A DNA stretch of 64,000 nt from Takakia lepidozioides. Taxonomy: Eukaryota; Plantae; Bryophyta. The stretch is from NCBI GenBank assembly GCA_030704615.1, contig CM060732.1, positions 37,138,001 through 37,202,000 on the forward strand. Reading direction: 5' to 3'. This document shows positions 1 to 37,465 of this stretch, one piece after another (the stretch's first letter is position 1; each line of letters begins with the position of its first letter). Made by a program: the position numbers and the translations under genes. Below the pieces are notes generated by a model, which did no database searches, was not told where the DNA came from, and saw nothing but the letters and a program-made list of their open reading frames with translations.

Positions 1-200
1 GGTGCAGCTGAGCAGGCAGATTGAAACATGGTCTGGTAAAACCAAGCTGACTCTCCCAACAACCTTGTAAACATCAAGAAGAATACCAAATCGTGATGCT
101 AACAGGAGCCAAGAGCCCACATTTGCAGGATGGACAAACATCTTTACATTGTACATTAAGAAAAGCCACACCTTGCAATTGTGGTTGTCCCACCATCGTG
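1..200 (-). repeat. Partial inverted copy of the PDF-motif exon/intron repeat unit
   Basis: The reverse complement (cacgatggtgggacaaccacaattgcaaggtgtggc...gatttggtattcttcttgatgtttacaagg...tttcaatctgcctgctcag) matches the unit of the 15.9-18.5 kb array. Confidence 0.85.
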
Positions 201-281
201 CAAACTCTAGCTCTCATGCGGTGTACTCAGAATCTGCAAATGTCTCCCTCCGCGCTCAAGCACCCCGCGGTGCAAGACGCC

Positions 282-3200
282 TGTCAAGTTATTTTACCAC
301 TAGTGTGAAACTAGCTAGGAAATAGCTAGCTTTTACATATTGACATTTGGGATTGGCCCAAGTGTCAATCCGGGGTCAAGGCAGATTTAGGCCCTGGAGT
401 GGTTATCTTCATGGCAAGCGCGGGAGGCTCATCTTTCTCGAGTTGAGCCTCACCGCGCCTAGCTATGGCGCCGTAGTGTGGATTCCCCATGGCGTGGGGT
501 GCACTTGGCTTGACTTGTATTTGAGTGATGAGGTTATATATGCATGAGTTTATGCTTCAACTTTGTGAGCTCTCATGAGCTTGTGCTTGTATGTCTTCTT
601 CTTCTTTATCACTCGAGAAAGATCAGCTCGAGTTTGTGAGTGCCAGGTTCGAGTTGTTTTGTAGCACTTGTGTTTTCATGAGAAGCGGTTCAGCCTAGAG
701 TGCAGGGATTCGTGCATGAGCCTATCCAAAGTGGATAGAGTGCAAAGGCGAACAGGTTGCAGGTTTGCAATGGATAGAGAGGCGGGTAGCCTATGTTGAA
801 GAGCGGCGTTGCATAGCTCAACGCTATGGCAACCAAGTTTGGGCTTCTAGTGTGAAGTGGGGGAGATGCTGGTCTCGAGTGGACGAACTGGTGGTCGTCT
901 TCTTCAGCTGCAGGCCGAGTTAAGGAGCTGCAGCAATGTGGAGCTACGAGGGTGTTAGATGCAAGTCACAGTGATCGGGAGCTCCAACTTCAAGCTCATA
1001 AGGAGGTATGAATGAAGAGAGATGGTTGATTTCTCTTGTATGCAAGCCAATGCATTTGTGGCTATGTTGAGTTGGGGGTTTCAATCTGAAACTCCAGCGG
1101 TATGAGGGCTCTTGTCATTGCAAGAGTAGGGCTGGAACAAGAGCTAAGAGGTGCGGCAAGGCCATGGAATGTACACCTAGGGTTTCAGAGCTTGGAAGAA
1201 GAGCTCTTGCACCACAAGAGGAGTGTCTTGTGGCTGGAAATGTAAGCCTTAGGGTTTCAGGAGCTTGGCAAGGGCTGTGGAGTGCTTAGTCTTGTCTTAG
1301 AGAGCATCAAGGAGCCAAGGAGCCAAGATAAGGGGCTGATATCTCTTGTGTGAAGAGGTTGCATGTGTGGAGCATGTATTCGGCTCATTGAAGCTTACAT
1401 CTTCAAGTTTGAAGGGCAAGCAAGGAAGAGGGAAGGGCTGACCTCCCTTATGTGAGGGCAATGCATGTGTGGAGCATGCTATCAGCCTGGTGAAGGCTTG
1501 CACTTTCAGGTCTGGGAGTGCAAGAAAGGAAGGAAGGGGCTGGTTTCCCTGTAGGTCATGTGTAGAGCATGCTTTCAGCCTGCTGCAGCTTGTATTTTCA
1601 GGTCTGTGGGTGCAAGAAAGGAAGCAAAAAGGGCTGATTCTCTTGTGGCGAGAGTAGGGCATGTGTGGAGCATGCCTTCAGTCCATTGGGCTTTTGTTTT
1701 CAAGCTTTAGAGAGCTAAAACGGAAGGTCTAGGGCTGGTTTCCACTTGGAGTGAAAGAAAAGCACTTGTAGGGCCTATGTGAGTTGGGGTTTCAACTTCA
1801 AGCTTGAAGGGAGCGCAACTCTTGAAGCAGCAGGTGTAGGGGGCTGGAATAGGCTCTAAGACAGATGCTATGGCCAAGGAGAGTGCTTGAATGAGTGCTC
1901 ACAAGGGCTGGGAACCAGCAGGGCTTGGTTGTTTGCCATTGAGTTTAGTGGCGTGTTTGGGGAGGCTAAGTGAGAAAGAAGGCTTGGTTTGTGGCAACCA
2001 CCTCATGGCTTAGGGCTACTATGGTGGTGTGTGGGAGCCGAAAGAGCAAGAATACCTTGCTAATTCCTCACAACCGCCATAGCTCGGTGCAAAGAAGCCT
2101 AGAGTCCAAGAGACACAAACCCTATCTTGGCGTGGCTAAGCCCCTTGGAGAAATGGCTAAACTGCCAGAGCGGCCATAGAGGGGCTGTGTCGGTCTGTGC
2201 CGGTGGCCTCCCGGGCTGTGACGAGCTGTGTCGGGCTGCGCCGGGCTGTGAGGGGCTGTGCGGGGTTGTGTCGGTGGCCTCCGGCTGTGGGGGGGCTGTG
2301 AGGGGCTGTGTTGGGCTGTGCCGGTGGCCCTCCGGGCTGTGCGGGGCTGTGTCGGGCTGTGACGAGCTGTGCTGGTGGCCCTCCGGGCTGTGAGGGGCTG
2401 TGCAGGGCTGTGTCGGTGGCCTCCCGGGCTGTGACGAGCTGTGCAGGGCTGTGCGGGACTGTGTCGGGCTGTGACGAGCTGTGCCGGGGGCCCTCCGGGC
2501 TGTGGGGGGCTGTGCGGGGCTGTGTCGGGCTGTGCCGGTGGCCTACCGGGCTGTGACGAGCTTTGCCGGGCTGTGGGGGGCTGTTCCGGGCTGTGCCCCT
2601 GGCCTTTGGGGCTGTCACGGGCTATGACGGGCTGTGACAGGCTGTGCCCGTGGCCTTTGGGGCTGTGATGGGCCGTGAGGGGCTGTGATAGGCCGTGCCT
2701 GAGGCCTTTGGGGCTGTGACGGGCTGCGCCTCTAGCTTTTGGGGCTGGGGCCTATGTGGGGCTGTGACGGCTGTCACCAGTGACCAAGGTAGGCCTGTGC
2801 TGGTCTGTGGTGGCCCGTGTTGACCTGTGGAGGGCCAGTGCTGACTCGTGGAGGCACTGGTGGACTGCCTAAGGACTGGCATGTGGTCTTGAAGGCCGAA
2901 TTTTGACGCTCGTGGAGGGCAGTTCGAGGAGTATCTTCATGATATTCCCATGGTTATGCAAGTGTGAGAGGAGAGGAAGAGTGTTGGGATGAGAGCATGC
3001 TGGGGTTAGGCATTGCTTTAGCTTCTCTTCCTCGTACTTTTCCACCCTCTCATTAGGCCAAGACCTTTCCGTAGGTGGAGGCAAGAGTCAGTCCGGGTTT
3101 GGGCTGGGGTGTCCTTGCAGGAGCAACACCGTGGAGTTGTTTTTGGTGTGGGGGAGTTGTCGTTCTGATTTCTTGTGTTTGGATCCCCCCCCCATACATG

Positions 3201-3515
3201 CATGCTTGATTGTGTGCCATGTTAGTTTTGTGTGGGCGCTTGCTTTCATAGGGATTAGGCCGGGTTTGATCACCGGTCAGTCCTAGAGTATGCTGTCGGT
3301 GGTGAGGCTGGAGTGATGACCAGTCAGACCATCATTGTTTCTCCTGTGGTGAGGTTGGAGATGATGACCAGCCAACCATAGGAGTGCTTGCGGTGGGTGC
3401 AGGTGTAGGCTATGTTAGGAACCTAGTATTCCAAACCATAAGCCGCAACAGGTTCTCTACCCGGTAACCTTGTGGAGAGGGGGTTAGAGACATGTTCATG
3501 ACCGGTTGAGTGACA
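282..3515 (+). repeat. Putative 5' LTR of family A (~3.2 kb)
   Basis: TGTCA...TGACA termini shortly upstream of gag; the 3' boundary is inferred because no 3' LTR is present for comparison. Confidence 0.6.
2181..2775 (+). repeat. GGGCTGTG/CACAGCCC-rich minisatellite inside LTR A
   Basis: Tandem degenerate gggctgtg(t/a)c units; source of the spurious Cys/Gly/Pro ORFs. Confidence 0.9.
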
Positions 3516-3720
3516 GTTTGTCAACACGGAGGTGCCACTAGTTGCTGGGGAGAGTGCCAATTCGAGTACTAGCGATACTAGTGGGTACACGAGACAAGGT
3601 GTGCGGTTTAGGCCACCTTCACCTCTTGTGTCTTCTACGGAAGGTTCTGATTCGGATTGTGAATCAGGAGGACTCACACCGGCGGTGCAAGTTGTTTCCT
3701 TGCCATTGTTGTAGGACACA

Positions 3721-5038
3721 ATGGAGGAGATGTATGGAGCTACTAAGGGGCCTCGTAGGTACTCTGGAGCTATGGGCACCATCGAGTTGGATGATTTTAT
3801 CCAAGAGTTTGATAGTTGGTGTGATTTGCAGCAAATGCGCAATCCACAACTATTTACGCCTTTCATGGCATGGAAGGGGCTGTTTCAGCACCTTGAGGGC
3901 CCGCCTATGGATGATTACCATGAGTTCAGGCGGGGGCATGAGGTTGAGATTGAGGAGTAGAGGATGTACTGGTCACCCGACTATGTCTCCATCACTAGGG
4001 GCACTAGAGCCACGAGGGCATTGGCTACACCTGCCGCTGCACCGGCAGCTTCAGCAAGCAGCAGTGGGACTGGTGATACCATAGCTACGACGCCCACCCA
4101 AGCTACTGCTGTACCAGCACCAGTGGCGGTGCCTGCCTTCAACCCTGTTGTGGAGTTCTTCGAAGAGTTAAGAGGGAACTACCAAGGGGTGAGGACAGAG
4201 AAGTTGCGGAGCTTACAAGAGTTCCAACGGAAGCCGACTGAGAGCTTGAGGGAGGCTTTCACTCGCATGAGGCGATTGATAAATGTAACCCAAGGGGTTA
4301 CGGAAGCTCAGGCAGTCCAATTCTGGTATGGGATATTGGACAAGGAGCTGAGGAGAAGGGTGCGGGATGCAACTCTCCTACAAGCGGCTCAACCCACCTT
4401 AGCAAATGTGTTTTTGCTGGCAGAGCGGATAGAGCTCAACATGGTGGAGGAACGAGTGGTCATGGTGGGATTTGCTAAGGAGACACCGCGGGGTAGTGGT
4501 GCTCCTAGCCAACCACTACCTCAACGTGCTCAAGGCAACAAGGGGGCTCAAGTGAAGCCCAGGGAAGGACAGAGAGGACCTCAGATGCAGGGGTCTCTCC
4601 CTTCATTTGCAGGCCAGCAACGGGCGGATGTGGTATGTTGGACATGTGGAGGACCCCATGTCAAGAAGGATTGCCCAGAGGGAGGCAAAGGGCTAGCATA
4701 TGCACAGCCTGCACAATTGCAGTGTAGGCATTGTGGCAAGCACGGGCATGGAGAGGCCCAGTGTTATGGTTTGCATCCTGAGTTGCGCCCAGGCCAGTTC
4801 CAAGGGAACAATGGTGGCCGGGGGCGGGGTGGAGCAGCCCAGAGAGGACGAGGTGGCCAGGCATGAGGTGCAGGCCAAGGGCAAGCTCAACATGGCCAAG
4901 GACGCGGAGGTCAGGGTGGTGACCAAGGCATGGCCAACCGGCTTCAGCAGCTAGAACAGAGGCTCGCTGCCATGGCCATAGCTCAGTTGGTACCGGCTCC
5001 AAGGCCGGATGGTCCACCTCCTGCTCCTGAGGGAGGAG
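3721..5038 (+). pseudogene. gag: gag of family A (left copy), disrupted
   Basis: Capsid-like FFEELRGNYQG...FQRKPTESLREAFTRM; CWTCGGPHVKKDC and CRHCGKHGHGEAQC knuckles; in-frame stops at 3958-3960 and 4864-4866. Confidence 0.85.
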
Positions 5039-7712
5039 GTGACAACTGAGGTGGTCCTGGTGCAATACCCGCACTCTCCTCCTCTCCTGACGGTACAAAA
5101 GCTTCTACCCAGGCTTGTTGCACACGACAATCAGCAATCTGCTGCAAATCCTTGCTCGTACCCCACAATGGAGTATGAGCAACCATGGCAGACAACTCCG
5201 TCGTACCATGTATGTCATCCTGCTCTGCTGGAGGTGGCACATCCTCTGCATGGGCATTGCCCTCCGGCAACTCTTGAGGCCAAGTCACTGCAGCTGTGAA
5301 TGCTACTAGTGTCGGCATCTTGCCTCACTGGGCAACCGCAACTCCTCCTATGAACGTGACAGGGAGCTGCACACGCCGGCCTTCCCCTGACTGCCATCCA
5401 GGCCTATAGGAAGCTAACTCCTCCCAAAAATCCAGGGTGAAGCCCATGGGGTACAACACTGCCCCACCAACCAGGACATCATACGAGACCGCGTCTGTCA
5501 CAATGGCCTTGGCTCGCATCACTGAGCCATCTGTAGGGTGATCCGGCCGTAGTCTGATATCCAACTCACGCCGTGTCATGCCCCGAGCCTGCTCCAATCC
5601 TCCCAGAGACGTCTGTATCTGGAAAGGACAAGGCTCCATATCCGCCTCCGTGAGGCCCAAGCCTGCAATAGCAGCTTTGCCCAGCATCAATGGCTGAGCT
5701 CCCGAGTCCAACAAGACCCGCAGTGGCCGGTACCTCTTGCCTGCCGGTCCACTCAAACAGAAAATACCATCCTGGTTGTCTAACAAGACAACTCCAGGTG
5801 TCACCATGGCGCGCTCAATGGCTGGCCTAGCTGGCAGCTCCATTAACTTGGCAGCTGCAGCTTGCCATGGCGCCGCCGTGGCAGTCTTGACCCTCAAATC
5901 CGAGGATCCCTCCGGCACTACACCTCCCACTATCTCCGCAGAAGATGAAGTAACCTTCCCACTCTCACATAGTGTAGCTGCCAGCCTGAACACCTCAGCT
6001 GGTCTTACCCCCAACGTCGCAATCATGGTAGCCGAGAACAATGGAGCCTGACACACAGATGTGGCCGCTCCTAGCAGCACACTAGCTGCCGTAACCTTTG
6101 CAACACTAGGTAGTGGTGCTACCCGTGTAGCTCTCCCCAATGGCATAGTAACTTCCGCCTCGGTAACAGTCAGGCGAGAACTAGGTGCCATGGATGGCGT
6201 CGACACTGTCTCCGCCAATGTGAATGACTGAGGAAGCCTAGCCTGACGGTTTGCCTTCCCACGCTGTGGATCCAACTCCACCTCTGCACCTCGTGGCTCA
6301 GGAACTCGTGCTGCTCCTCGAGTCACGGCCGCAGTAGACTCCACCTGCACTACTGGTAGTGCTGCTCCGCACATGAATCCCATGCCTCCCATATCTCCTC
6401 CCTTAGGAGCAGGAGGTGGACCATCCGGCCTTGGAGCCGGTACCAACTGAGCTGTGGCCATGGCAGCGAGCCTCTGTTCTAGCTGCTGAAGCCGGTTGGC
6501 CATGCCTTGGTCACCACCCTGACCTCCGCGTCCTCGGCCATGTTGAGCTTGCCCTTGGCCTGCACCTCATGCCTGGCCACCTCGTCCTCTCTGGGCTGCT
6601 CCACCCCGCCCCCGGCCACCATTGTTCCCTTGGAACTGGCCTGGGCGCAACTCAGGATGCAAACCATAACACTGGGCCTCTCCATGCCCGTGCTTGCCAC
6701 AATGCCCACACTGCAATTGTGCAGGCTGTGCATATGCTAGCCTTTTGCCTCCCTCTGGGCAATCCTTCTTGACATGGGGTCCTCCACATGTCCAACATAC
6801 CACATCCGCCCGTTGCTAGCCTGCAAATGAAGGGAGAGGCCCCTGCATCTAAGGTCCTCTCTGTCCTTCCCTGGGCTTCACTTGAGCCCCCTTGTTGCCT
6901 TGAGCACGTTGAGGTAGTGGTTGGCTAGGAGCACCACTACCCTGTGGTGTCTCCTTAGCAAATCCCACCATGACCACTCGTTCCTCCACCATGTTGAGCT
7001 CTATCCACTCTGCCAGCAAAAACACATTTGTTAAGGTGGGTTGGGTCGCTTGTAGGAGAGTTGCATCCCGCACCCTTCTCCTCAGCTCCTTGTCCAATAT
7101 CCCATACCAGAATTGGACTGCCTGAGCTTCCGTAACCCCTTGGGTTACATTTATCAATCGCCTCATGCGAGTGAAAGCCTCCCTCAAGCTCTCAGTCGGC
7201 TTCCATTGGAACTCTTGTAAGCTCCGCAACTTCTCTGTCCTCACCCCTTGGTAGTTCCCTCTTAACTCTTCGAAGAACTCCACAACAGGGTTGAAGGCAG
7301 GCACCGCCACTGGTGCTGGTGCAGCAGTAGCTTGGGTGGGCGTCGTAGCTATGGTATCACCAGTCCCACTGCTGCTTGCTGATGCTGCCGGTGCAGCGGC
7401 AGGTGTAGCCAATGCCCTCGTGGCTCTAGTGCCCCTAGTGATGGAGACATAGTCGGGTGACCAGTACATCCTCCACTCCTCAATCTCAACCTCATGCCCC
7501 CGCCTGAACTCATGGTAATCATCCATAGGCGGGCCCTCAAGGTGCTGAAACAGCCCCTTCCATGCCATGAAAGGCGTAAATAGTTGTGGATTGCGCATTT
7601 GCTGCAAATCACACCAACTATCAAACTCTTGGATAAAATCATCCAACTCGATGGTGCCCATAGCTCCAGAGTACCTACGAGGCCCCTTAGTAGCTCCATA
7701 CATCTCCTCCAT
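5039..7712 (-). pseudogene. gag-pol: gag-aspartic protease of family A (right copy), disrupted
   Basis: ORFs 6849-7901, 6567-6803, 5325-6503 and 4983-5318 lie in one frame separated by stops; retropepsin motifs LLDSGA and YDVLVG. Confidence 0.85.
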
Positions 7713-7917
7713 TGTGTCCCACAACAATGGCAAGGAAACAACTTGCACCGCCGGTGTGAGTCCTCCTGATTCACAATCCGAATCAGAACCTTCCGTAGAA
7801 GACACAAGAGGTGAAGGTGGCCTAAACCGCACACCTCGTCTCGTGTACCCACTAGTATCACTAGTGCTCGAACCGACACTCTCCCCAGCAACTAGTGGCA
7901 CCTCCGTGTTGACAAAC

Positions 7918-10900
7918 TGTCACTCAACCGATCATGAACATGTCTCTAACCCCCTCTCCACAAGGTTACCGGGTAGAGAACCTGTTGCGGCTTATGGTTT
8001 GGAATACTAGGTTCCTAACATAGCCTGCACCTGCACCTGCATCCACCGCAAGCACTCCTATGGTTGGCTAGTCATCACCTCCAACCTCACCACAGGAGAA
8101 ACAATGATGGTCTGACTGGTCATCACTCCAGCCTCACCACCGACAACATACTCTAGGACTGACCGGTGATCAAACCCGGCCTAATCCCTATGAAAGCAAG
8201 CGCCCACACAAAACGAACATGGCGCACAATCAAGCATGCAGGTATGGGGGGGATCCAAACAAAAAAAAATCAGAACGACAACTCCCCCACACCAAAAACA
8301 ACTCCACGGTGTTGCTCCTGCAAGGACACCCCAGCCCAAACCCGGACTGACTCTTGCCTCCACCTACGGAAAGGTCTTGGCCTAATGAGAGGGTGGAAAA
8401 CTACGAGGAAGAGAAGCTAAAGCAATGCCTAACCCCAGCATGCTCTCATCCCAACACTCTTCCTCTCCTCTCACACTTGCATAACCATGGGAATATCATG
8501 AAGATACTCCTCGAACTGCCCTCCACGAGCATCAAAATTCGGCCTTCAAGACCACATGCCAGTCCTTAGGCAGTCCACCAGTGCCTCCACGAGTCAGCAC
8601 TGGCCCTCCACAGGTCAACACGGGCCACCACAGACCAGCACAGGCCTACCTTGGTCACTGGTCACAGCCGTCACAGCCCCACATAGGCCCCAGCCCCAAA
8701 AGCCAGAGGCACAGCCCGTCACAGCCCGTCATAGCCCCAAAGGCCTCATGCACGGCCTATCACAGCGCCTCACGGCCCATCACAGCCCCAAAGGCCACGG
8801 GCACAGCCTGTCACAGCCCGTCATAGCCCGTGACAGCCCCAAAGGCCAGGGGCACAGCCCGGAACAGCCCCCCACAACCCGGCAAAGCTCGTCACAGACC
8901 GGGAGGCCACCGGCACAGCCCGACACAGCCCGGAGGGCCCCCGGCACAGCTCGTCACAGCCCGACATAGCCCCGCACAGCCCCCCACAGCCCGGAAGGCC
9001 ACCGGCGCAGCCCGGCACAGCCCCCCACAGCCCCGCACAGCTCGTCACAGCCCGGGAGGCCACCGACACAGCCCTGCACAAGCCCCCACAGCCCGGAGGG
9101 CCACCAGCACAGCCCGACATAGCCCCGCACAGCCCTGCACAGCCCCCCACAGCCCGGAGGGCCACCGGCACAGCTCGTCACAGCCCGACACAGCCCCGCA
9201 CAGCCCTACACAGCCCTACACAGCCCCCCACAGCCCGGAGGACCACCGGTACAGCCCCGCACAGCCCTCCACAGCCCCCCCACAGCCCGGAGGGCCACCG
9301 GCACAGCCCCGCACAGCCCCTCACAGCCTGGCGCAGCCCGGCACAGCTCGTCACAGCCCCTCACAGCCCGGCACAGCTCGTCGCAGCCCGACACAGCCCG
9401 GAGGGCCACCAGCACAGCCCCGCACAGCCCCTCACCGCCCGGCGCAGCCCGGCACAGCTCGTCACAGCCCGGGAGGCCACCGGCACAGCTCGACACAGCC
9501 CCTCTATGGCCGCTCTGGCAGTTTAGCCATTTCTCCAAGGGGCTTAGCCACGCCAAGCTAGGGTTTGTGTCTCTTGGACTCTAGGCTTCTTAGCACCGAG
9601 CTATGGCGGTTGTGAGGAATTAGCAAGGTATTCTTGCTCTTACGGCTCCCACACACCACCATAGTAGCCCTAAGCCATGAGGTGGTTGCCACAAACCAAG
9701 CCTTCTTTCTCACTTAGCCTCCCAAACACGCCACTAAACTCAATGGCAAACAACCAAGCCCTGCTGGTTCCCAGCCCTTGTGAGCACTCATTCAAGCACT
9801 CTCCTTGGCCATAGCATCTGTCTTAGAGCCTATTCCAGCCCCCTACACCTGTTGCTTCAAGAGTTGCGCTCCCTTCAAGCTTGAAGTTGAAACCCCAACT
9901 CACATAGGCCCTACAAGTGCTTTTCTTTCACTCCAAGTGGAAACCAGCCCTAGACCTTCCGTTCTAGCTCTCTAAAGCTTGAAAACAAAAGCCCAATGGA
10001 CTGAAGGCATGCTCCACACATGCCCTACTCTCGCCACAAGAGAATCAGCCCTTTTTGCTTCATTTCTTGCACCCACAGACCTGAAAATACAAGCTGCAGC
10101 AGGCTGAAAGCATGCTCTACACATGACCTACAGGGAAACCAGCCCCTTCCTTCCTTTCTTGCACTCCCAGACCTGAAAGTGCAAGCCTTCACCAGGCTGA
10201 TAGCATGCTCCACACATGCATTGCCCTCACATAAGGGAGGTCAGCCCTTCCCTCTTCCTTGCTTGCCCTCCAAACTTGAAGATGGAAGCTTCAATGAGCC
10301 GAATACATGCTCCACACATGCAACCTCTTCACACAAGAGATATCAGCCCCTTATCTTGGCTCCTTGGCTCCTTGATGCTCTCTAAGACAAGACTAAGCAC
10401 TCCACAGCCCTTGCCAAGCTCCTGAAATTCTAAGGCTTACATTTCCAGCCACAAGACACTCCTCTTGTGGTGCAAGAGCTCTTCTTCCAAGCTCTGAAAC
10501 CCTAGGTGTACATTCCATGGCCTTGCCGCACCTCTTAGCTCTTGTTCCAGCCCTGCTCTTGCAATGACAAGAGCCCTCATACCGCTGGAGTTTCAGATTG
10601 AAACCCCCGACTCAACATAGCCACAAATGCATTGGCTTGCATACAAGAGAAATCAACCATCTCTCTTCATTCATACCTCCTTATGAGCTTGAAGTTGGAG
10701 CTCCCGATAATTGTGACTTACATCTAACATCCTCGCACCTACACATTGCCGCTGCTCCTTAACTCGGCCTGCAGCTGAAGAAGACGACCACCAGTTTGCC
10801 CACTCGAGACCAGCATCTCCCCCACTTCACACTAGAAGCCCAAACTTGGTTGCCATAGTGTTGAGCTATGCAACGCCGCTCTTCAACATAGGCTACCCGC

Positions 10901-11401
10901 CTCTCTATCCATTGCAAACCTGCAACATGTTCGCCTTTGCACTCTATCCACTTTGGATAGGCTCATGCACGGATCCCTGCACTCTAGGTTGAACCGCTTC
11001 TCATGAAAACACAAGTGCTACAAAACAACTCGAACTTGGCACTCACAAACTCGAGCTGATCTTTCTCGAGTGATAAAGAAGAAGAAGACATACAAGCACA
11101 AGCTCATGCGAGCTCACAAAGCTGAAGCATCAACTCATGCATATATAAACTCATCACTCAAATACAAGTCAAGCCAAGTGCACCCCACGCCATGGGGAAT
11201 CCACACTACGGCGCCATAGCTAGGCGCGGTGAGGCTCAACTCGAGAAAGATGAGCCTCCCGCGCTTGCCGTGAAGATAACCACTCCAGGGCCTAAATTTG
11301 CCTTGACCCCTGGATTGACACTTGGGCCAATCCCAAATGTCAATATGTAAAAGCTAGCTATTTCCTAGCTAGTTTCACACTAGTGGTAAAATAACTTGAC
11401 A
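7918..11401 (-). repeat. Putative 5' LTR of family A, right copy (~3.5 kb)
   Basis: Reverse complement of 282-3515 with a longer minisatellite. Confidence 0.6.
8660..9502 (-). repeat. CACAGCCC minisatellite in right LTR A (about 250 bp longer than in the left copy)
   Basis: Tandem cacagccc units. Confidence 0.9.
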
Positions 11402-13284
11402 AGAAGGTCCTGAGGAACTGAATCAAAGGCTTTGTGAAAGTCCATGAAGCAAACATAGACCATTCTTTTCTCATAGCGTGCACTTTCCACCATAACCTGA
11501 AGAGTGAAGATGTGGTCAATAGTGGATCGGTTTCGACGGAAACCAGCCTGTCCCTCAGCACGAATGTGAGAGGACTCAGCCCAATCATCCAGTTCCATGG
11601 CCACTACTGCCCCAAACAGTTTAGCAAGCAATGAGGACACCATGAGAGTACGATAGTTTGTCGGTGCGAGCCTGTCACCGCTCTTAAAAAGTGGGTGGAT
11701 GATGCTCTTTGTCCACTCTGTTGGAAAGCCCCGTTGCACCACCTCATTGAAGAGGTTAGCTATAAAAGGGGCTAAAGTAGGTGCCACATGCTTGATGAAT
11801 TCACTTTGAAGTCCTGAAATGTCCACCGCTCTGCCATTTTGTAGCTTCTTGATTGTCTTACTGACATTGGCTGTAGTAAAGAGAGAGAAGTGAAGGGGTT
11901 TAGAGGTTATGGGAGAAGGAGTTTGGGTTGGGGAATGGTACAAAGACTGTGCATACTCATGCCAGACATGAATGTCAGTGATTGGGGGGGGATCTCTATG
12001 AGGTTTAAGGAGGGACCAAAAAGAACGAGGAGAAAATCTGATTTTAGCAAGGAAAGAAGATTGCAACTTGATAGTGTAGGCTCGCTTTTTGGATCTAATG
12101 AGGGACTTATAGTGCTTAAGAGCAAGATTAGTGGATTCTGGAGAAGAATTGGTATCAAGTAGTAAAAATTTGATGCGACGTCTAGCAGTCTTGCATTCCT
12201 CATCATAAAATGGTGCGTAATGACGAGTGGAGAAGGGTGAGGTAGATGGAAGGGTGACGGGAAAGGATCGCAGGGCTGAGTCCCAAAGGGCTTGGGTAAG
12301 ATGTGTAGCCTTGTCGTTAGGAGATGATAGATGTAGAATGGAAGGGAGGGTTGACACTAGGTATGTTTCATACTCGACGTCGTGTAAGTGAGAGAAATGG
12401 GTATTAAAGTGGATACGTGGGTGTAAGGGAAGAGATGCAGAGGGGATCCTCACGGGGAGGGAGATGGAAGGAAATGCAAAGGAAAGGCAAGAGTGATCAG
12501 AATCCGGGTACCTCGTGATGTAAAAGGAGCTTATTCTATCAGACTTGTTGGGGCTCCCCAAGAGATAGTCAACCACGCTTTGGCCTTTGTACGTGTGGCA
12601 AGTGAACTAGCTGGAGGATTTGAAGTTGGTTGTTCCATTGTAAATGGCCAGCCCCTGAGTTTCACAAAACTTGAGTAGGTGGTGACCGTAACTTGTGATT
12701 TCACAAGAGGAACCTGCACTTTGTCTCTCCAATTCCGTATGCGAGTGTTGGATGTGTAGAGGATCTGTGTGGTCGAAGGTGGGGGCCTGTAGTGATCCTG
12801 TACGGGCGCTGAAATCTCCAACCAAGAAAATGTCCGTTTGTGGGGTACGGAGACGGGCCATATCGTCTTCCAATGGAACATATGGTGAATCTGTTCAAAT
12901 ATATAGGCCGCTGTGCGGAGATGCAGCCGGAGCAAAATAACATCCTGCCAGCAAGATGTTGTAGCCTTTGATGTGACACCAAATGTACCTTGCCAGTGGG
13001 TCTTTGTATGGGAAGGAGATAAGTAGGAGAAGCCAATCAGCAAAGTAACAAGCCACACCTCCAGATCCTTTGAGCCCTATACGTGGACGAATCACTGACT
13101 GAAAGCTATAACCGAGAATAAAAGGGGGGTCATTTCCTTCATACGCATGAGTTTCCAATAGAAAAAGAACATCACACTTGGAAAGAATATCTAGAAGCCC
13201 TTGAGGGTGGCTCCACAACGAGCCATTACAGTTCCATGAGCCAATGTGTAGATGTGAGCGTGCGTTGGTCTCATGGTGCCCCAA
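11402..13284 (-). pseudogene. LINE ORF2 (endonuclease + partial reverse transcriptase), disrupted and truncated
   Basis: Pieces 12895-13284, 12607-12873 and 11380-12576. Confidence 0.88.
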
Positions 13285-14434
13285 CCCCTATTTAGAGCTA
13301 GAGGGGCGACGTTTGTGTTCCCGGACAATTACCCTCCCATCTTGGTATACGGCATAGTGCCCCTGAGCTCAAGCTTGCTTAACCTGCAAGAGTTGCGCTC
13401 GCATGGCGTTGTATTGCAAAGGGGTCAAGTCATCTTTGAGGTACATACCCTGACCTCTCAATTGAGGCCTCTGCCTGAGGACTCTATCCCGAGCACCCTT
13501 GTTCTTGAATCTAATGAAGAGGACTTTGTGCTCTGAAGATCCTGCACGCCAAGCCCTTTCAATGCCACTCGCGCCCCGTGGGAGTGCAAGGTTTTGTTGA
13601 ATAAGGCTGGTGGCAGCGTCAAGAGGGTCCCCCTCAGCAAGGCCCCCTAGCTTCCCAGTGACCCTGATGTTAAGGGCTTTGAAAGCCCGTTGTTGTTCCT
13701 CTCGCAAGGTAGCCGAGACTGTCTCCTCCAGAGAGTGAGGACTGTTGTTGGATGTGCTCCCCTTAACTATATTAGCCCAGGAGGAGGCCTCTGCCTTGTG
13801 AGCTTGGAGCTTCCGAGCCATTGTAGACGTCGCAATTCTGTGTGTTTCCAGCTCTTTGCTAAGGGATTCCACCTGCAGGTGGATGCTTGCTGTGAGGGGA
13901 TCTGGGAGGCTCTTCTCTGTGAAGGTCTTCACTTCGCCTTCAAGTTTTGAAAGACGCGTATGTGTGGATTTGTCATTGAGATGTTTCGTCAGACCTTGAA
14001 GTTTGCTAGTGCACTCCTGAAGAGAGGCCCGCAAAACGTTGTCCTGAACTCGCATATTGTTCTCCAAGTTTGTGTCTCTGTCTGTCATGCATTTCTGCCA
14101 ATCTTTGTCCAAGGAATCCATGCGCTGTTCCCACTTCTTGTTAAGGGAAGCCATCCGCGTCTCCCAGTCTTTGTCTAGGGAAGCCAACCGCTCTTCCGAG
14201 TCATTGTCACGGGCAGCGAGCACTTGCTGCAGAGTCTCCTCCGAGATGCATTTCGTTTGTAAGATGGAGATTTGGTCCCGAAGTGTTTGAACATCAGCAC
14301 TCCTTGTGGAGTACTGACGCAAAGGAGAGGCTTGCTGAGAGACAGGGGCAGGAAGAAGAAGCAGAGGGGAATCAGGTCGACGTGAGGGAGACAGGCAGTC
14401 TACCTCGTCGGCAGCCGTCCTTTGGCGTTTGGAG

Positions 14435-14578
14435 TGTTGGAGTGTCAAGTGTATAGCCTTTGCACGGCACTTTGAGAATAGAACGGGACGGGTAGCTCAG
14501 TGGTAGAGCACCCCACCGGAATGGGGGAGGTCCTAGGTTCAATCCCTAGCCCGACCACACGCCAGTGGTTTTCCAACA
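14435..14578. mobile_element. 144-bp solo LTR of a tRNA-bearing TRIM (Helenus-like)
   Basis: TGTTGGA...TCCAACA termini; 5-bp TSD tggag/tggac (1 mismatch); internal tRNA-like sequence. Confidence 0.8.
14486..14557 (+). pseudogene. tRNA-like cloverleaf with Pol III A and B boxes, inside the mini-LTR
   Basis: GGACGGG-TA-GCTC AGTGGTA GAGC-A-CCCCA CCGGAAT GGGGG-AGGTC-CTAGG TTCAATC CCTAG-CCCGACC-A; acceptor-stem mismatch and irregular anticodon arm. Confidence 0.8.
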
Positions 14579-14827
14579 TGGACGTCATGGTGTGGTGGAG
14601 GTGGCGCTAGCGCGCCAACGCCCGTGAGCGCAGCGCCGACGTGCTGCGTGCAAACATGAGGAAGAAGCACACAACAAGGTAAAAGCGCACAGCGCAACGG
14701 AAGATAGGGCTAGCGGACAAGAGAAACGACGCAAAAAAAAGACATAAAAGTTGTCTGAACACGCGACGTCACAACACGTAATTAGAGACCTTACCAGTAC
14801 GCTATACACCCGAATATGTAACATATC

Positions 14828-14830
<3 letters not shown>

Positions 14831-14867
<37 letters not shown>
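14831..14867. repeat. (TA)n microsatellite
   Basis: Direct observation. Confidence 0.97.
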
Positions 14868-14870
<3 letters not shown>

Positions 14871-15049
14871 ATTTTTTCAGACCCTTTCAATATACATAGT
14901 CTATCTGTGGGGGTATTTAATTAACCCTCTTCTGTTCACGCACGTGATAGGTACATTAACCCTTGGTGCACCCCCCGCGCATCAGACTTGCAATAGGGGA
15001 ACTGCCTCCACCATCAGCATACTAACCAATCTCTTGTGTCAATTGTGGG

Positions 15050-15235
15050 GATGTGAGGACACTATGGAAAACGGACAGACCACAAGGTGCGCTGCACATT
15101 TTAAATGAGCACGACATTCGGGCAGACTGCAGTACTTATGTGTGCTTGTTGCCGGATTGTGTCAAAATGAAAAGCCTAGCAGAGGGAAAGCAAGTGTATA
15201 CCCACATTATCCAAAGCGGATTCAAGCCAAACATA
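15050..15235 (+). pseudogene. PLS-class PPR gene fragment (N-terminal region)
   Basis: TYVCLLPDCVKMKSLAEGKQVYTHIIQSGFKPNI resembles an L-type PPR motif. Confidence 0.7.
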
Positions 15236-15890
15236 CGACTACAACAGATCCCGGCTTTAATGTTTGCCACATTTGCCCAGTCGTAGCAGATATGTCTACA
15301 AAATGCAAGGGGCAGTCCCTTGCCAATTGTGACCACTAGAAGTCTTATATACCACCTTTGTACCTCTGTCATGTCAGGATCTGTGGTCAAACACGTTTGA
15401 CCAAATAGGAGAAGATGGTAGATACGATTAGGAGTCATGGCCAAAACTGCAACAGGATGATGTGGGCATAGGAATGTATGACTGCTAGTATTCATGAATG
15501 CACGTGGCGATTGCTGGTTGCCCAAGGAGTGTCTATGTGGAAAATACAAAAATAAATGGATGCAATAGAACGAGGATGTGACTACAAAAGACGACGTGTC
15601 TACATATCATTGCTCGCGTGGTTGAAATATTGTGGTGTGTTGGATACAAGTGCATCTAACGGCTGCAAATGATACGACTTCGAGGGTGAATATATACAAA
15701 TATATAAAGCTAAAAATACCTTCACATAATAACATGGAATATGTAATCATTTTATATATTGTTAGGGTGCAAAACGTTCAAAATTTCAAAAGGTTGGCTC
15801 GAATTTAGGGTTGCTAGGTCGCAGAGTGCAAGGCTGGGACAGTGTGTTTTTTGGGATCTACGTCTTCTTAGTGCCGAAGCATCGCGATAG

Positions 15891-18530
15891 CAGGCCGTGT
15901 TTCAATCTCTACCTGCTCGAATGCACCGTGGCCGCTCTCACAGACCTATCCGACATTACCTGACTATAGACACAAATAGCACACACGAGGTCATCTTGGG
16001 TTCATGGTCAGTCAAATCCTCCATTGGTCAAGACACAAGGTCGAGGACAACGTGGTGAGGGCACCTTCTTCTTCGACCTATTTCAGCCTGTTTTGCCCTC
16101 TCATCAGACTCAGCCCTGCATTTGCAACACGGAGCAGAGCTGGCATGAGTTTTTGAAAGATCCTTCACGATGGTGGGACATCCGCAATCAAAAGGTGTGG
16201 CTTTTTCTTAAGGTACGATGTGAAGAAGTTTGTCCACCCGACAAATTTGGGCTCTCGGCTCCTGTTAGTACCATGATTTGGTATTCTTCTTGATGTTTAC
16301 AAGGTTCTTGGGAGAGTCAGCTTTGTCTTAGCAGGTCGTGTTTCAATCTCTGCCCGCTCAGTTGCACCTTGGTGGTTCTCACGGACCAATCCGACATTAC
16401 CAAAGTACGGACACAAGCAGCACACACAAGAGGTCCCCTTGGATTCATGGTCAGTTGAATCCTCCATGGGTCAAGACACAAGGTCGAGGACAATGTGGTG
16501 AGGGCACCTTCTTCTTCGACCTATTTCAGCCCTCTCATCAGTCTCGGCCCTACATTTGCAACAGGGAGCAAAGCTGGCATGAGTTTTTGAAAGATCCTTC
16601 ACGATGGTGGGACATCCGCAATCAAAAGGTGTGGCTTTTTCTTAAGGTACGATGTGAAGAAGTTTGTTCATCTTACAAATTTGGGCTCTCGGCTCCTGTT
16701 AGTACCATGATTTGGTATTCTTCCTGATGATTACAAGGTTCTTGGGAGAGTTAGCTTTGTCTTAGCAGGTCGTGTTTCAATCTCTGCCTGCTCAGTTGCA
16801 CCTTGGTGGTTCTCACGGACCAATCCGGCATTACCAAAGTACGGACACAAGCAGCACACACAAGAGGTCCCCTTGGATTCATGGTCAGTCGAATCCTACA
16901 TGGGTCAAGACACAAGGTCGAGGACAACGTGGTGAGGGCACCTTCTTCTTCGACCTATTTCAGCCTGTTTTTCCCTCTCATCAGACTCGGCCTTGCATTT
17001 GCAACACAGAGCAGAGCTGGGATGAGTTTTTGAAAGATCCTTCATGATGGTGGGACATCTGCAATCAAAAGGTGTGGCTTTTTCTTAAGGTACGATGTGA
17101 AGAAGTTTGTCCATCCTACAAATTGGGGCTCTCGGCTCCTGTTAGTACCATGATTTGGTATTCTTCTTGATGTTTACAAGGTTCTTGGGAGAGTCAGCTT
17201 TGTCTTAGCAGGACGTGGTTCAATTTCTGCCCGCTCAGTTGCACCTTGGTGGTTCTCACGAACCAATCTGACATTACCAAAGTACGGACACAAGGAGCAC
17301 ACACAAGAGGTCCCCTTGGATTCATGGTCAGTTGAATCCTCCATGGGTCAAGACACAAGGTCGAGGACAATGTGGTGAGGGCACCTTCTTCTTCGACCTA
17401 TTTCAGCCTGTTTTGCCCTCTCATCAGACTCGGCCCTACATTTGCAACACAGAGCAGAGCTGGCATGAGTTTTTGAAAGATCCTTCACGATGGTGGGACA
17501 TCCGCAATCAAAAGGTGTGGCTTTTTCTTAAGGTACGATGTGAAGAAGTTTGTTCATCCTACAAATTTGGGCTCTCGGCTCCTGTTAGTACCATGATTTG
17601 GTATTCTTCTTGATGATTACAAGGTTCTTGGGAGAGTCAGCTTTGTCTTAGCAGGTCATGTTTCAATCTCTGCCCGCTCAGTTGTACCTTGGTGGTTCTC
17701 ACGGACCAATCCGACATTACCAAAGTACGGACACAAGCAGCACATACAAGAGGTCCCCTTGGATTCATGGTCAATCGAATCCTCCATGGGTCAAGACACA
17801 AGGTCGAGGACAGTGTGGTGAGGGCACCTTCTTCTTCGACCTATTTCAGCCTGTCTTGCGCTCTCATTAGACTCAGCCCTGAAGTTGCAGCACTTGTGCG
17901 GAGCTGGCATGAGTTTTTGAAAGATCCTTCACAATGGTGGGACAACCGCAATCGCAAGGTGCGGCATTTTCTTAATGTACGTTGCCAAGAAGTTTGTCCA
18001 TCCTGTAAATGTGGGCCCTCGGCAGACACAAGCAACACACACAAGAGGTTCTTTGGGTTGATGGTCGGTCAGATCCTCCATTGGTTATGACACAAGGTCG
18101 AGGACAATGCGGTGAGGGCACCTTCTTCTTCAACCTATTTCAGCCTGTTTTGCCCTCTCATCAAACTCGACCCTGAATTTGCTATGATAAGGGAGTGACA
18201 TAAGAGAGTGTTTGACAAGATGGCTGAACGTGATGTGGTTTCCTGGAGTGCAATAGTGATTGCAGTATATGTCCAGCATGGTCGTGGATTGGAGGTTTTG
18301 GAGACCTAGGTGCAAATGATGCAAGAGGGGGTGAAGCCCGAACATGTCACTTTCATTTGTGTCCTCAAGGCATGTGCCAACTTGGCAGCCCTGGAAAAGG
18401 GCAAGGAGGTCCATGGGAAGAAGTTTGTCCATCCTGCAAATGGTGGGTTCTTCCTTAGCTCACTACAGACACGAGCAACACACACAACGGGTCCTTTCGG
18501 ATTGATGGTCAATTAAATCCTCCAAGGGTG
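15891..18530 (+). repeat. ~443-bp tandem array (5 full units plus partials) derived from an OSB-type PDF-motif exon + intron
   Basis: ggtcaagacacaagg recurs at about 16026, 16469, 16903, 17346 and 17789; spliced consensus SWHEFLKDPSQWWDNRNRK^TNPTLPDYRHKQHTQEVLWVDGRSNPPWV. Confidence 0.85.
18195..18418 (+). pseudogene. PLS-class PPR fragment
   Basis: VFDKMAERDVVSWSAIVIAVYVQHGRGLEVLET*VQMMQEGVKPEHVTFICVLKACANLAALEKGKEVHG. Confidence 0.88.
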
Positions 18531-20453
18531 AAAGAAAAGCTAGTTGTTTTCATGTCACAATAATCTGGTTGCTGCCTATGCGAGTCTGGTTGAACCTCAT
18601 GCGAAGCGCATGGAGGCTTTACAACAGCAGTTAGATGTGTACAGACTCACGGAGGAGCAGACTCTCAGGGGTGCCACACACGACTTGGTGGATAATCACC
18701 TTATGCAGGTCTGGTTAACACAAGGGCCAGTGGAAGGTAAAGCACCACGGAAGCTCACCCAGGGCGAAATGAATGAGCTCAGACTGCAGGTGCAGAACAT
18801 TGCCACAACTACTATAGACAATGTCTATAGTAGGATAGCGGAGCTACATGAGGATATAGAAGGCCTGCAGACTCGGGTGGATGACCTGAGTTCAAATATT
18901 GACAAAAGAGTCTTTGTACCTGAGGATCAGCTGATGGCTACTTATTTACAAGCCAGGACTCTAATTTTTCAGTCTTTTTCGCAAGGGGTGCAGGAGATGC
19001 CAGTGGTAGAAGGGCCAGTTGTACCAATACCACAGCAAGTGACTGTGCAGGTAGCTGACCATGTTGTTACTACAGCCACACCACAACCTGAGGTATGGGG
19101 GGATGGTGCTTTTAACCCACCTAAGACTTCTGCTGCACGGGAGTACAGTCGGACTATGATTATGCCCTTCAACCAAATTCCCATTGTGTTGGATTTGGAT
19201 TGGAAGGAATTTAGTCCTCCGCAGTCGTTGGCACATTACTACCAGATCATGCGCATTTGGCTGCCAGTGGCAACTAGGACTAAGGTTCTTCCGAACAATC
19301 GACCCATTGAGGATCATCACTTTGCGAGGTACTGGTCTGAAGCAGGTACCATGTTGAAGGAATTAATTGCATTCCAAGTTGTACATGGGTACATTTATAC
19401 CAAGACCAATGAGGTATCAAGTATTGTCATGGGCTGTGGATTATACTATGCTGCTTGTTTTCTGGCACGTTATCACATTGAGCAACATAGGATGCAATCC
19501 CGATTTTCTGAGTTATTCCAGTGGGGATCATTGGGTCTTACCTTCAGTGCCACCTCATATGTACCTATATGATGCAAAAGTTATGATGCAGAAGGATTCC
19601 CAACTTCGTTCATGGTTTCATTCGACTTGGAACAATTTGACAACACAGAAATTCGGCCCTGAGGATATTTTCTTTAAGGGACATGATGCATGGAAATACT
19701 TGCACTGTTCCAAAGTCATTGACATACCTCTTACCTATACAGATAAAGAGTTCAGGACGTTCACTAATTTTGTTTGCCAGCGCTTACAACAAGTTGTACA
19801 ATTTAAACTTCCAGATATGGTCGGACCACATTGTATGCCACACAGGATATCACTTAAAGTTCGGGCGTTAAAACACCTAAGGGGAGACGATGATTCTGAT
19901 ACTACTGTTTCTTCAGCGGACTCTTTTGACATGGCAGAAGACTATGCACTTCAGATGGCAGAGAAGAAACGACGGGGATCTCTTATGCCTGAGAGGTTAC
20001 CTCGTTATCAGCCAAAGGAGGGTCAGACATTTCCAGGTAGTGCTCAATTATCTCCGTCAACCAGTGACAGAACTCGGGCTCGCACACGGAGTCCTTCACG
20101 AGACTCTCATCGTCAGAAGGGTGCTCGCTCACAAAGGTTTGCTAATCCCAAACAGTAACCCGTGAGGACACGACTTTTTAAGAGGGGGAGGGGTAAATGT
20201 TAGAGGGCTGCTTGGGGACTTAGACGCTTTTACGGGTTCTGTGGGGTACCCTTATTTTTTGCGCAGACTGAGACCAACAGGAGCCGTAGGGGTGGCAGCA
20301 GCAGGCTTTAGGGGGGTTACATAGCCCGACACAGCTTCACACAGCCAGTCACAGCCCGCCACAGTTTCGCACAGCTTCACACAGCCCGTCACAGCCAGTC
20401 ACAGCCGCCACAGCTTCGCACAGCCCGACACAGCCTGACACAGCCTGACACAG
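18531..20453 (+). mobile_element. 3' fragment of gypsy family B: extra ORF, PPT and truncated 3' LTR
   Basis: PPT AAGAGGGGGAGGGG (20180-20193), then TGTTAGAGGG at 20198 matching the start of the LTR at 33149 (-); the LTR breaks inside its CACAGC repeat. Confidence 0.85.
18544..20158 (+). pseudogene. Extra ORF of unknown function upstream of the PPT (frameshifted, ~540 codons)
   Basis: Overlapping ORFs 18544-19572 and 19367-20158; coiled-coil N-terminal part and Arg/Ser-rich tail. Confidence 0.6.
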
Positions 20454-24395: not shown

Positions 24396-25184
24396 TCTAG
24401 ACAAACAAAAAGGCTTTGTTTGAAACAGCTGAAGGAAAGCTTGTAGGGCACAGAGCATGAAGGTATGGTTGGCACAGAATAGAACAAGTAAGTGCGTGTA
24501 AGCCTGTGGGGCTTGCAAGTATCGAGTGAGAGAAAATGTACTCTCAATGCTTCCGTCCTTGCGCCACTGCGTGAGAAGTAAAGCGAGTGTGTAATCCGTT
24601 ACATCTGCCATAGCTACAAAACTAGTGCTTTGATTGCCCCTGTCGTCGAGACCTTGGCTATTTAGAGCCACCCCGACTCTTCCGCTCATAACACTTCATA
24701 TTTCTTGTTCTTGTTTCTTGGAGGGAACCACCTGCATATAATTCGCACTCCTGATTGGCTGTGGACTGCTTAGGTAATTTCTTAATTCCACCCCCCTCCA
24801 TGGACATTCCCACCTGGAATGTCCAGTAGGACAGCACATGTGGCATAGGTTTCCCTTTTTTGTACTCGGAAAGGGTTCCATTACCCTTACACTGAATGCA
24901 TTAATGGGCCCACAATTAATATTAGCTGTTGTACCGGGTAAGTACTTTGACGGCCCGATTTGTCCGTTTGCATGATGAGATTTTTTTTTGCAATTGATGC
25001 AGTGCGGTGTGGCACGCCTTAGTGGCCACGTGTCCGTTTCAAAACAAGCCCCCGACTTCCCCTCTCCGCGTGGCATATTCTCCAAGTTTGACTTCCAAAC
25101 TTCCTCTTCACTCGATGGCCATTTTTTAAACGTTAATTTGCGTCCACCTGTCACTGACCCTATGGACTGTGTAATCTGTATGGG

Positions 25185-25365
25185 CTGTGTTGGGCTGTGA
25201 CAGGCTGTGTGGCACTGTGGTGGGCTGTGATAGGCTGTGTCTCGCTGTGATGGGCTGTAATAGGCTGTGTCTCGCTGTGATGGGATGTGATAGGCTGTGT
25301 CACGCTGTGATGGGCTGTGATAGGCTGTGTCATGCTGTGATGGGCTGTGATAGGCTGTGTCACGC
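25185..25365 (-). repeat. 30-bp tandem repeat (about 6 copies) downstream of integrase
   Basis: ggctgtgataggctgtgtcacgctgtgatg units, translating as DTAYHSPSQR. Confidence 0.9.
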
Positions 25366-25589
25366 TTATATTTCCTGCCTTGGTCATACACGCTCGGCTT
25401 AACGACAAGTGCTCCATACTCCGTTGGTATCACTGGCGCAGCCCGTGACTGCTTTTGCGTTTCAACATGCAAATCGTGCTGCAATGGTTTGTCATGGATA
25501 CCACTGTACCCCTTCAACTTATTGGCATTGACTCTTCCCAGCATCTCTTTGTTAATGGTTTGTAAGATGGCGGTGTTGTTATCATACAT

Positions 25590-28500: not shown

Positions 28501-28759
28501 CCCACTCTGGGTGTGCAGTGAACAGGGTAGCTTCCTGCTCCTCATCAAGTCCTCCCCTCCAGTCATACTCCCTGACCCCTCGAGGTCTTCTCGTAGCAGG
28601 TAATCTACTAGATTTCTTAGTGGTAATTTGTATCTTGTGCATCCCATCATGCACAGTTAGTAGCTGGGAATTCCAGTCATGGAATACCCTGGCTTGCTTC
28701 AGCCACGGACGTCCCAACAATAAGGAGTAAGCTTCCATGACTTCATCCATTTTCAACAC
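25590..28759 (-). pseudogene. pol: pol (RT, RNase H, integrase) of family B
   Basis: RT FMDGFSGYNQ and VFLDD; RNase H DAS...NYSTTEREALA...DHQAL; integrase H-H-C-C, WGLDFVGP, SDQG, QGNGQAE; frameshifts at both ends. Confidence 0.95.
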
Positions 28760-28761
28760 AG

Positions 28762-31499: not shown

Positions 31500-31519
31500 G
31501 TCCCATGTCTTTCATTTCT

Positions 31520-32085
31520 TTAATGTGGCAATAACCAAAACTCTCTTCTGTAATATCTCTCGTATATGCCTGGGTTTCTTTCAAGCTTCCATGCACCCTT
31601 GGCTATACTAGAAGTCTCCGTTACCATATAACCATATGGCAAACAAGTCTGGAAAGCTGTTCTTGGTGTGAGTTTGATCCACAGAATATCCTTTGGAATC
31701 CAATTCTTTACCAGTACAAGCTCTTCATGCATATGAGTATAAACATTCACCTTCCTTTCCTCCCAGCCTTCAAACTCTACTCGCTTAATGGATAGCAATG
31801 CTATCACATAAACCAGTGTTGGTAACCAACGTGCTCTTCCTCTACAGGCCACCTGATAAATCTTTATCACCCCTTTCTCCAGACCCCACTCAGGGTCAGC
31901 ATCATGCACTCTCTTAAGAGTGTTTTCTTTACAACCGTCTGGCAATTCCAAGAACCTCTGAAAGAATTGTTTGGACAATCTTTCCTTCTCAGTTTCACAG
32001 GGAATTTGATTCACATCAAATTCTTTAATTCTCCAACCACCATGATCCCACCAGATGCCTGTCACATCTAGCTGTTCATGACCCA
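31520..32085 (-). CDS. Open frame between PBS and gag (5' extra ORF or frameshifted gag leader)
   Basis: About 190 stop-free codons ending 20 nt before the gag ATG, out of frame with gag. Confidence 0.4.
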
Positions 32086-32087
32086 GT

Positions 32088-32105
32088 TCCCCAGTATGGT
32101 CGCCA
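32088..32105 (-). promoter_or_regulatory. Primer binding site, tRNA-Arg-like
   Basis: TGGCGACCATACTGGGGA, 2 nt after the LTR end; resembles the Tat/Ogre-type TGGCGACTCC(A/G)CTGGGGA. Confidence 0.75.
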
Positions 32106-32107
32106 AA

Positions 32108-37284: not shown

Positions 37285-37465
37285 TAGTTCGATCCGACAT
37301 TATCTGACTACAGACACAAGCAGCACACACAACAGGTTATTGTCAGGCTGTGTTTCAATCTCTGCCTCCTGTTAGTACCATGATTTGGTATTCTTCCTGA
37401 TGTTTACAAGGTTCTTGCGAGAGTCAGCTTGGTTTTGCCAGGCCGTGTTTCAATCTCTGCCTACT
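37285..37465 (+). repeat. Deleted copy of the PDF-motif repeat unit
   Basis: gatccgacattatctgactacagacacaagcagcacac...ctcctgttagtaccatgatttggtattcttcc. Confidence 0.8.

Follow-up and report, generated by a model that had tools for sequence, protein, structure and literature searches.

Two truncated Ty3/gypsy copies joined head-on in an 11-kb palindrome of Takakia lepidozioides: structure, likely origin and hairpin potential

The 64,000-nucleotide stretch of the moss Takakia lepidozioides analysed in this work (GenBank assembly GCA_030704615.1, contig CM060732.1, positions 37,138,001 to 37,202,000 of the forward strand), referred to throughout as the window, carries near its start an 11-kb palindrome composed of two inverted copies of the 5' part of a Ty3/gypsy long terminal repeat (LTR) retrotransposon. 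The arms, at 282-5038 on the forward strand and 6395-11401 on the reverse strand, flank a spacer of 1356 bp. This arrangement emerges both from a repeat search and from a global alignment between the left arm and the reverse-complemented right arm, and upholds the near-identical inverted arms around a 1.36-kb spacer described in an earlier, sequence-only reading of the same DNA. Judged by their sequence, both copies are truncated derivatives of the retrotransposon and not complete members of its family. As to origin, we incline, with a confidence somewhat above the halfway mark, to a history in which two sibling insertions were truncated and joined to one another by one end-joining rearrangement, and thereafter decayed in silence. 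The DNA itself displays the palindromic structure with its termini, flanks that are unrelated, a join that is blunt and arms whose differences follow a neutral pattern; the order of events is inferred. Each arm consists of a 3.2-kb non-coding block, a leader of approximately 200 nt and then gag, and both arms read inward; the inverted duplication takes in the terminal region of the element and part of its coding region (the 5' block and gag). The constituent features of the palindrome are as follows.

282-5038, forward strand: left arm, the 5' part of a Ty3/gypsy copy, cut within the gag-protease linker (repeat search, alignment)
282-3515, forward strand: left non-coding 5' block, TGTCA...TGACA, a candidate LTR with a provisional inner edge
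3511-3523, forward strand: ends-abutted motif TGACA-GTT-TGTCA, with its mirror at 7910-7922 in the right arm
3721-4866, forward strand: left gag, with ATG at 3721, two CCHC knuckles and a weak match to Pfam Retrotrans_gag
5038-5039, no strand: central junction, blunt, the left-copy gag linker head-on to the right-copy polyprotein
5039-6394, reverse strand: spacer, the single-copy continuation of the right copy (linker, aspartic protease, TGA, 95 further codons)
6395-11401, reverse strand: right arm, the 5' part of a second copy (non-coding block, leader, gag; repeat search, alignment)
6567-7712, reverse strand: right gag, with the mirror ATG at 7712
7918-11401, reverse strand: right non-coding block

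The inverted homology is collinear from end to end, with the outermost blocks (282-375 and 11308-11401) 99% identical and the innermost (3396-5038 and 6395-8037) 98% identical. Over 4754 aligned columns the arms differ by 113 substitutions (81 transitions and 32 transversions), which corresponds to an identity of 97.6%. The right arm, at 5007 nt, is 250 nt longer than the left (4757 nt), and 245 of the 253 nt inserted in the right arm fall inside a GC-rich minisatellite whose basic unit is 10 bp and which also shows longer periods such as 41 and 51 bp (2171-2738 on the left, 8706-9531 on the right). There are 11 insertion or deletion events in total, and outside the minisatellite the arms have diverged by about 1.9%. 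The window contains no Ns, and self-BLAST revealed no further copy of the palindrome's retrotransposon family within its 64 kb. At its outer ends the palindrome begins with TGTCA at 282 and finishes with the complement of that motif ending at 11401. The sequence-only reading had taken these ends to be precise LTR termini; the homology does end exactly at TGTCA on both sides, but a strict LTR status for the 3.2-kb block that they bound was not confirmed.

The coding portion of the arms is identified as gag by a weak match to Pfam Retrotrans_gag (E=0.0024) together with two CCHC motifs, and its closest relatives are gag proteins of liverworts (Marchantia, Calypogeia) and of Sphagnum, at 45-63% identity, which points to a bryophyte and not to a cereal. 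Within the spacer, an open frame on the reverse strand (5325-6503, its TGA at 5325-5327) carries VLLDSGA, with the D of DSG at 5706-5708; this frame has a weak match to Pfam Asp_protease_2 (E=0.026) and is 54% identical to the Marchantia gag-protease P0018, such that the earlier description of a protease spacer holds. The earlier claim that neither copy possesses reverse transcriptase (RT) or integrase also stands, as no RT, RNase H or integrase was detectable in 1-11700. Each arm is interrupted by stop codons of its own, namely TAG at 3712-3714 (leader) and 3958-3960 (gag) on the left, and TAG at 6849-6851 and 6816-6818 on the right. A further in-frame TGA, in the RGG-rich linker, is common to both arms (4864-4866 and 6567-6569), and Marchantia homologues are open at this position. 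No ATG occurs in the 200 nt upstream of the gag ATG (3520-3720, mirrored at 7713-7913), through which the right arm keeps the gag frame open; the encoded amino acids are conserved with predicted proteins of other bryophytes (…TR[RS]G[VL]R[FY]…PL[LI]WD-ME). The conserved start of this segment, A[AT]C-ACG-G, offers a favorable setting for initiation at a non-AUG codon, or may instead represent the primer-binding region.

For comparison with relatives, metagenome contigs were scanned with the gag alignment, and the 80 loci obtained were taken as Sphagnum DNA on the basis of their similarity to named Sphagnum proteins. The gene order in these relatives is gag, protease, about 1.6 kb of unknown sequence, RT, RNase H and integrase, and the 1.6 kb between protease and RT (for example L036:12700-14350) has no match to the gypsy pol probe. 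The 95 codons that follow the protease in the right copy, up to the junction, are homologous to the post-protease region of the Sphagnum relatives, and in two Sphagnum loci the right-copy coding homology extends to the last residue before the junction.

At the junction itself (5038/5039), the last matching base is 5038, and there is neither microhomology with the expected continuation of the left copy nor filler. A TGACA at 5040-5044 was considered as an integrase footprint and set aside, as its chance expectation is approximately 2% and the site lies inside conserved coding sequence, which makes coincidence more likely. In the gag frame, the differences between the arms amount to 2.5 synonymous against 15.5 non-synonymous changes (a ratio of non-synonymous to synonymous differences per site, pN/pS, of about 1.9, with 0.23 and 0.67 in the other two frames), which argues that they arose without selection on gag and that the arms were practically identical when formed. 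CpG sites account for 21 of the 81 transitions, and the observed/expected ratio of CpG is 0.43; the depletion and the CpG-type transitions are probably the signature of methylated, silent DNA. Together with the private nonsense mutations in both arms, they are the marks of an ordinary dead transposable element (TE) remnant. At commonly assumed plant substitution rates, the divergence would place the age of the palindrome on the order of a million years.

The DNA on either side of the palindrome bears directly on how it arose, and comprises the following.

1-281, no strand: left flank, one unit of the dispersed and tandem PDF/OSB repeat (1-200) and then 81 unassigned bp (201-281; blastn against the window)
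11402-15500, reverse strand: right flank, a long interspersed nuclear element (LINE, a non-LTR retrotransposon) recognized by Pfam RVT_1; the right end at 15500 is approximate

The two flanks are mutually unrelated, and no target-site duplication of 4-6 bp is present at the outer ends of the palindrome, where CGCC/ACGCC on the left faces AGAA/AGAAG on the right. Searched against the window, the left flank (1-281) gave matches of 85% identity, on the opposite strand, at 16166-16368, 16600-16802, 17043-17245 and 17486-17688. Additional PDF/OSB repeat units occur at 35013-35528 and 37359-37456; both orientations are found in the window, and the unit at 1-200 is opposite to the tandem array at 16166-18023. 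Such a reversed unit would fit a large inversion with one end at 5039, without being proof of one. In the right flank, the LINE RT (RVT_1, E=4.2e-7) covers profile positions 6-88 only and is cut by the right copy just after its FMDFHKAFDSVPQDL motif, and the remainder of this RT was not found anywhere in the window. The notion that the LINE RT continues across the palindrome was rejected, as the translation of the left flank does not visibly carry it on.

In the history that we favor, two sibling copies from one burst would have been inserted by integrase at different sites in convergent orientation, one beside the PDF-repeat unit and the other into the LINE RT. A single repair of a double-strand break by blunt non-homologous end joining would then have fused the left gag linker at 5038 to the right copy at 5039, approximately 95 codons past the protease frame, and this event would have either removed the RT-integrase-3' halves of both copies by deletion or moved them away by inversion. 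Both arms would subsequently have decayed independently as silent, probably methylated DNA. This is the simplest course of events that accommodates the abrupt ends against unrelated flanks, the blunt join, the neutral differences in gag and the private stop codons. No reciprocal junction of the 3' halves is present in the window, so that any inversion must have exceeded 52 kb. That the arms look like two separate insertions follows from the unrelated flanks, the lack of a target-site duplication and the blunt central join, and the first two of these argue against a single concerted insertion. An origin by DNA-level fold-back or by breakage-fusion-bridge was rejected, as the inverted homology stops precisely where the element does, without reaching a single base into the flanks; a fold-back of a resident copy is excluded because the flank would have been carried along. 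Nested insertion of one copy in the other was likewise discarded, as both outer termini abut non-element DNA. Several considerations weigh against our preferred history, however. It involves three events, namely two close, convergent insertions from the same burst and a rearrangement with both of its breakpoints inside them. The in-frame TGA common to both arms means that the source was already defective or was subject to read-through, which is slightly awkward for two independent transpositions. Last, that the arms were identical at birth is more simply explained by one event, the snapping back of a cDNA (complementary DNA).

According to this last alternative, a plus-strand DNA comprising the 5' block, gag and protease copied itself after folding back, and the two 5' termini of the resulting palindromic cDNA were joined at two target sites through non-concerted integration. 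The topology is exactly that expected (1...y and then the complement of x...1, with the loop in the long copy), the element terminus is the same at the two outer ends, the arms were nearly identical when they arose, and both carry the same in-frame TGA. However, self-priming needs microhomology, and the turn-around point has none; moreover, the unrelated flanks and the missing target-site duplication require an extra, ad hoc non-concerted integration, and we consider this origin unlikely. Its more elaborate form holds that the snap-back palindrome was born in one step, with integrase accepting identical 5' termini, and that it is now a self-made hairpin locus of the clade with the ends-abutted motif, feeding small interfering RNAs (siRNAs) against its own family; to us this would be very unlikely indeed. 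An error of assembly, in which a chimeric read or a mis-join in the graph set two family copies head-on, might be suspected from a join that lies between repeats of one family and from a palindrome that begins 281 bp from the start of the window. Against this, the 2.4% divergence and 11 indels between the arms show that this is not a fold-back read duplicated on itself, the join connects non-homologous positions in opposite orientation, unlike repeat-induced mis-joins, and the sequence is free of Ns; an artefact of this kind appears quite improbable.

Whatever its origin, the palindrome plausibly has a capacity for forming double-stranded RNA (dsRNA). In agreement with the inward-pointing geometry put forward in the sequence-only reading, gag reads inward in both arms, and any transcript crossing 5038/5039 would be self-complementary. 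The predicted stem of such a transcript, approximately 98% paired, would measure as much as about 4.7 kb and end in a loop of 1.36 kb. Perfectly paired stretches of at least 21 bp number 50 and cover 4127 nt, the longest being 245 bp, and the predicted duplex energy of the 300 nt adjoining the loop is -724 kcal/mol. Were both 5' blocks to be transcribed convergently, their RNAs would likewise pair into dsRNA. As such, the locus could supply hairpin or double-stranded siRNA directed at its family, in the capacity of a passive by-product.

A considerably stronger proposition is that of a functional 'killer' locus, in which inward transcription would yield hairpin or convergent dsRNA, to be processed by Dicer-like enzymes into siRNAs that silence intact family members in trans, as Mu killer does for MuDR. 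In maize, Mu killer (Slotkin et al. 2005) is a partial inverted duplication of MuDR; read-through from a neighboring gene transcribes it, and both its siRNAs and its heritable silencing in trans have been demonstrated (described in PMC3440606 and PMC11624286). Several features of the palindrome would suit a comparable role: the inward gag in both arms, the long and approximately 98% paired stem, and the absence of the canonical polyadenylation hexamers, AATAAA or ATTAAA, on either strand of the palindrome. In addition, bryophytes have DCL1, DCL3 and DCL4 (PMC11799827), annotations of hairpin siRNA loci span the land plants (PMC7111516), and hairpins from tail-to-tail or nested LTR retrotransposons have been explicitly discussed as a trigger of silencing (PMC11624286). 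On the other side, the two arms have decayed as a silenced remnant would, and the window holds no intact family member on which such a locus could act. Furthermore, Mu killer needs read-through from the promoter of a flanking gene (PMC3440606), and the repeat unit and dead LINE that flank the palindrome offer no evident promoter of that kind; the equivalent configuration of EVD was found but not shown to be causal (PMC11624286). A functional killer locus is unlikely in our estimation.

The likeness to Mu killer is nonetheless worth delineating. Both are long inverted repeats of the 5' end of a transposon and part of its first gene, and Mu killer is predicted to give a hairpin RNA of about 4 kb. 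In contrast, Mu killer derives from a DNA transposon, MuDR, whereas the palindrome derives from an LTR retrotransposon; and while Mu killer is an inverted duplication of one element, the arms of the palindrome look like two insertions joined later. EVD of Arabidopsis is closer in kind, being represented by two opposite copies of one LTR retrotransposon with convergent 5' LTRs, for which dsRNA from a hairpin or from convergent transcription has been proposed (PMC11624286). The EVD case, however, is a fresh nested insertion of full-length copies, while the palindrome is an old (approximately 2% diverged), 3'-truncated pair that appears to have been fused by end joining. Like the hairpin siRNA loci of plants, the palindrome is a long and nearly perfect inverted repeat whose transcript, if one were made, would serve as a substrate for Dicer, but those loci are defined by the accumulation of small RNA (PMC7111516). 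An LTR-retrotransposon counterpart of Mu killer was sought, and the matter was left open, in PMC11624286.

Inverted-repeat structures of this type are a known by-product of transposon-rich DNA, and long inverted repeats derived from TEs are already known; the present one comes from an under-studied lineage. If transcribed, it would constitute a natural, kilobase-scale hairpin against an LTR retrotransposon in a bryophyte. To our knowledge, no LTR-retrotransposon equivalent of Mu killer has been demonstrated, and we know of essentially no study of how the silencing of new retrotransposons starts in bryophytes. The 5038/5039 junction and the arm-specific single-nucleotide differences allow RNA and small RNA to be mapped unambiguously, which renders the locus a well-defined and inexpensive test case. 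Absent RNA activity, the palindrome is one more rearranged TE remnant.

The nature of the 3.2-kb block deserves separate comment. On the left it contains repeats of approximately 92-102 bp (1314-1729), the GC-rich minisatellite already described and a single TATATA at 535. Its inner boundary depends solely on the TGACA at 3511-3515 and is inferred only, because the window offers no directly repeated 3' copy; neither copy of the retrotransposon has a paired 3' LTR within the window. This TGACA forms part of the ends-abutted motif TGACA-GTT-TGTCA, which stands directly upstream of the gag leader with a chance expectation of roughly 5% per arm, and homology to the Sphagnum elements starts exactly at the motif, at GTCA[A/T]CACGGAG. 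In the Sphagnum relatives, none of the A, leader and B regions is similar to the 3.2-kb block. The beginning of the outer block was also compared with the sequence following the internal TGTCA, and their likeness was dismissed, as it did not rise above shuffled sequences. After the block, no match to a tRNA-Met primer-binding site was better than chance, and the sole tRNA-like match in the window is unrelated. Two readings suit the block, namely a conventional LTR with an unusual primer-binding region after it, or the 'A plus leader' segment of an element of the permuted type; under either reading the outer end is an element terminus with gag downstream.

The permuted type is exemplified by a Sphagnum relative, the permuted-LTR Ty3/gypsy element L036 (contig Ga0116227_10002080, 8642-17845), whose layout is A-genes-polypurine tract-B-GC-A-B. 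Its segments are A at 8642-8979, B at 17281-17391 (ending in CGACA), A at 17394-17732 and B at 17733-17845 (ending in TGACA), and it has a 4-bp target-site duplication, CATA. The gag and protease of the palindrome are 45-60% identical to those of this permuted-LTR clade, with which it also has in common the termini TGTCA...[T/C]GACA and an ends-abutted motif of the form CA-N2-3-TG. The position of this motif differs, as in L036 (CGACA-GC-TATCA) it is near the 3' end, whereas TGACA-GTT-TGTCA of the palindrome immediately precedes the gag leader, in copies that lack their 3' end. Given that missing 3' end, the layout of the palindrome's family may be either permuted or conventional. The joint between the end of A and the start of B in L036 (…TTTCA-GT-TGTGG…) looks like a second CA-NN-TG junction, which would mean that its repeat unit carries two different ends-abutted sites. 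In another Sphagnum relative (L010), 468 bp of the gag-linker/protease region recur in inverted orientation (92.5%) after a truncated RT (11317-11784 and 15382-15849), which indicates that internal inverted rearrangements recur in the clade.

Elsewhere in the window there is a second gypsy element on the reverse strand (24696-33149), largely open and without a clear LTR pair, with gag at 29937-31499, CCHC and protease at 28762-30000, and RT-RNase H-integrase at 25742-28759. This element, at 24.7-33.1 kb, was considered as a full-length model of the palindrome's family and rejected, as its gag and protease are unrelated. It has only a GC-rich minisatellite of the GGGCTGTG type (32706-33027 and 25176-25366) in common with the palindrome, and a 256-bp piece of its 5' region is found inverted at 20198-20453 (95.7%).

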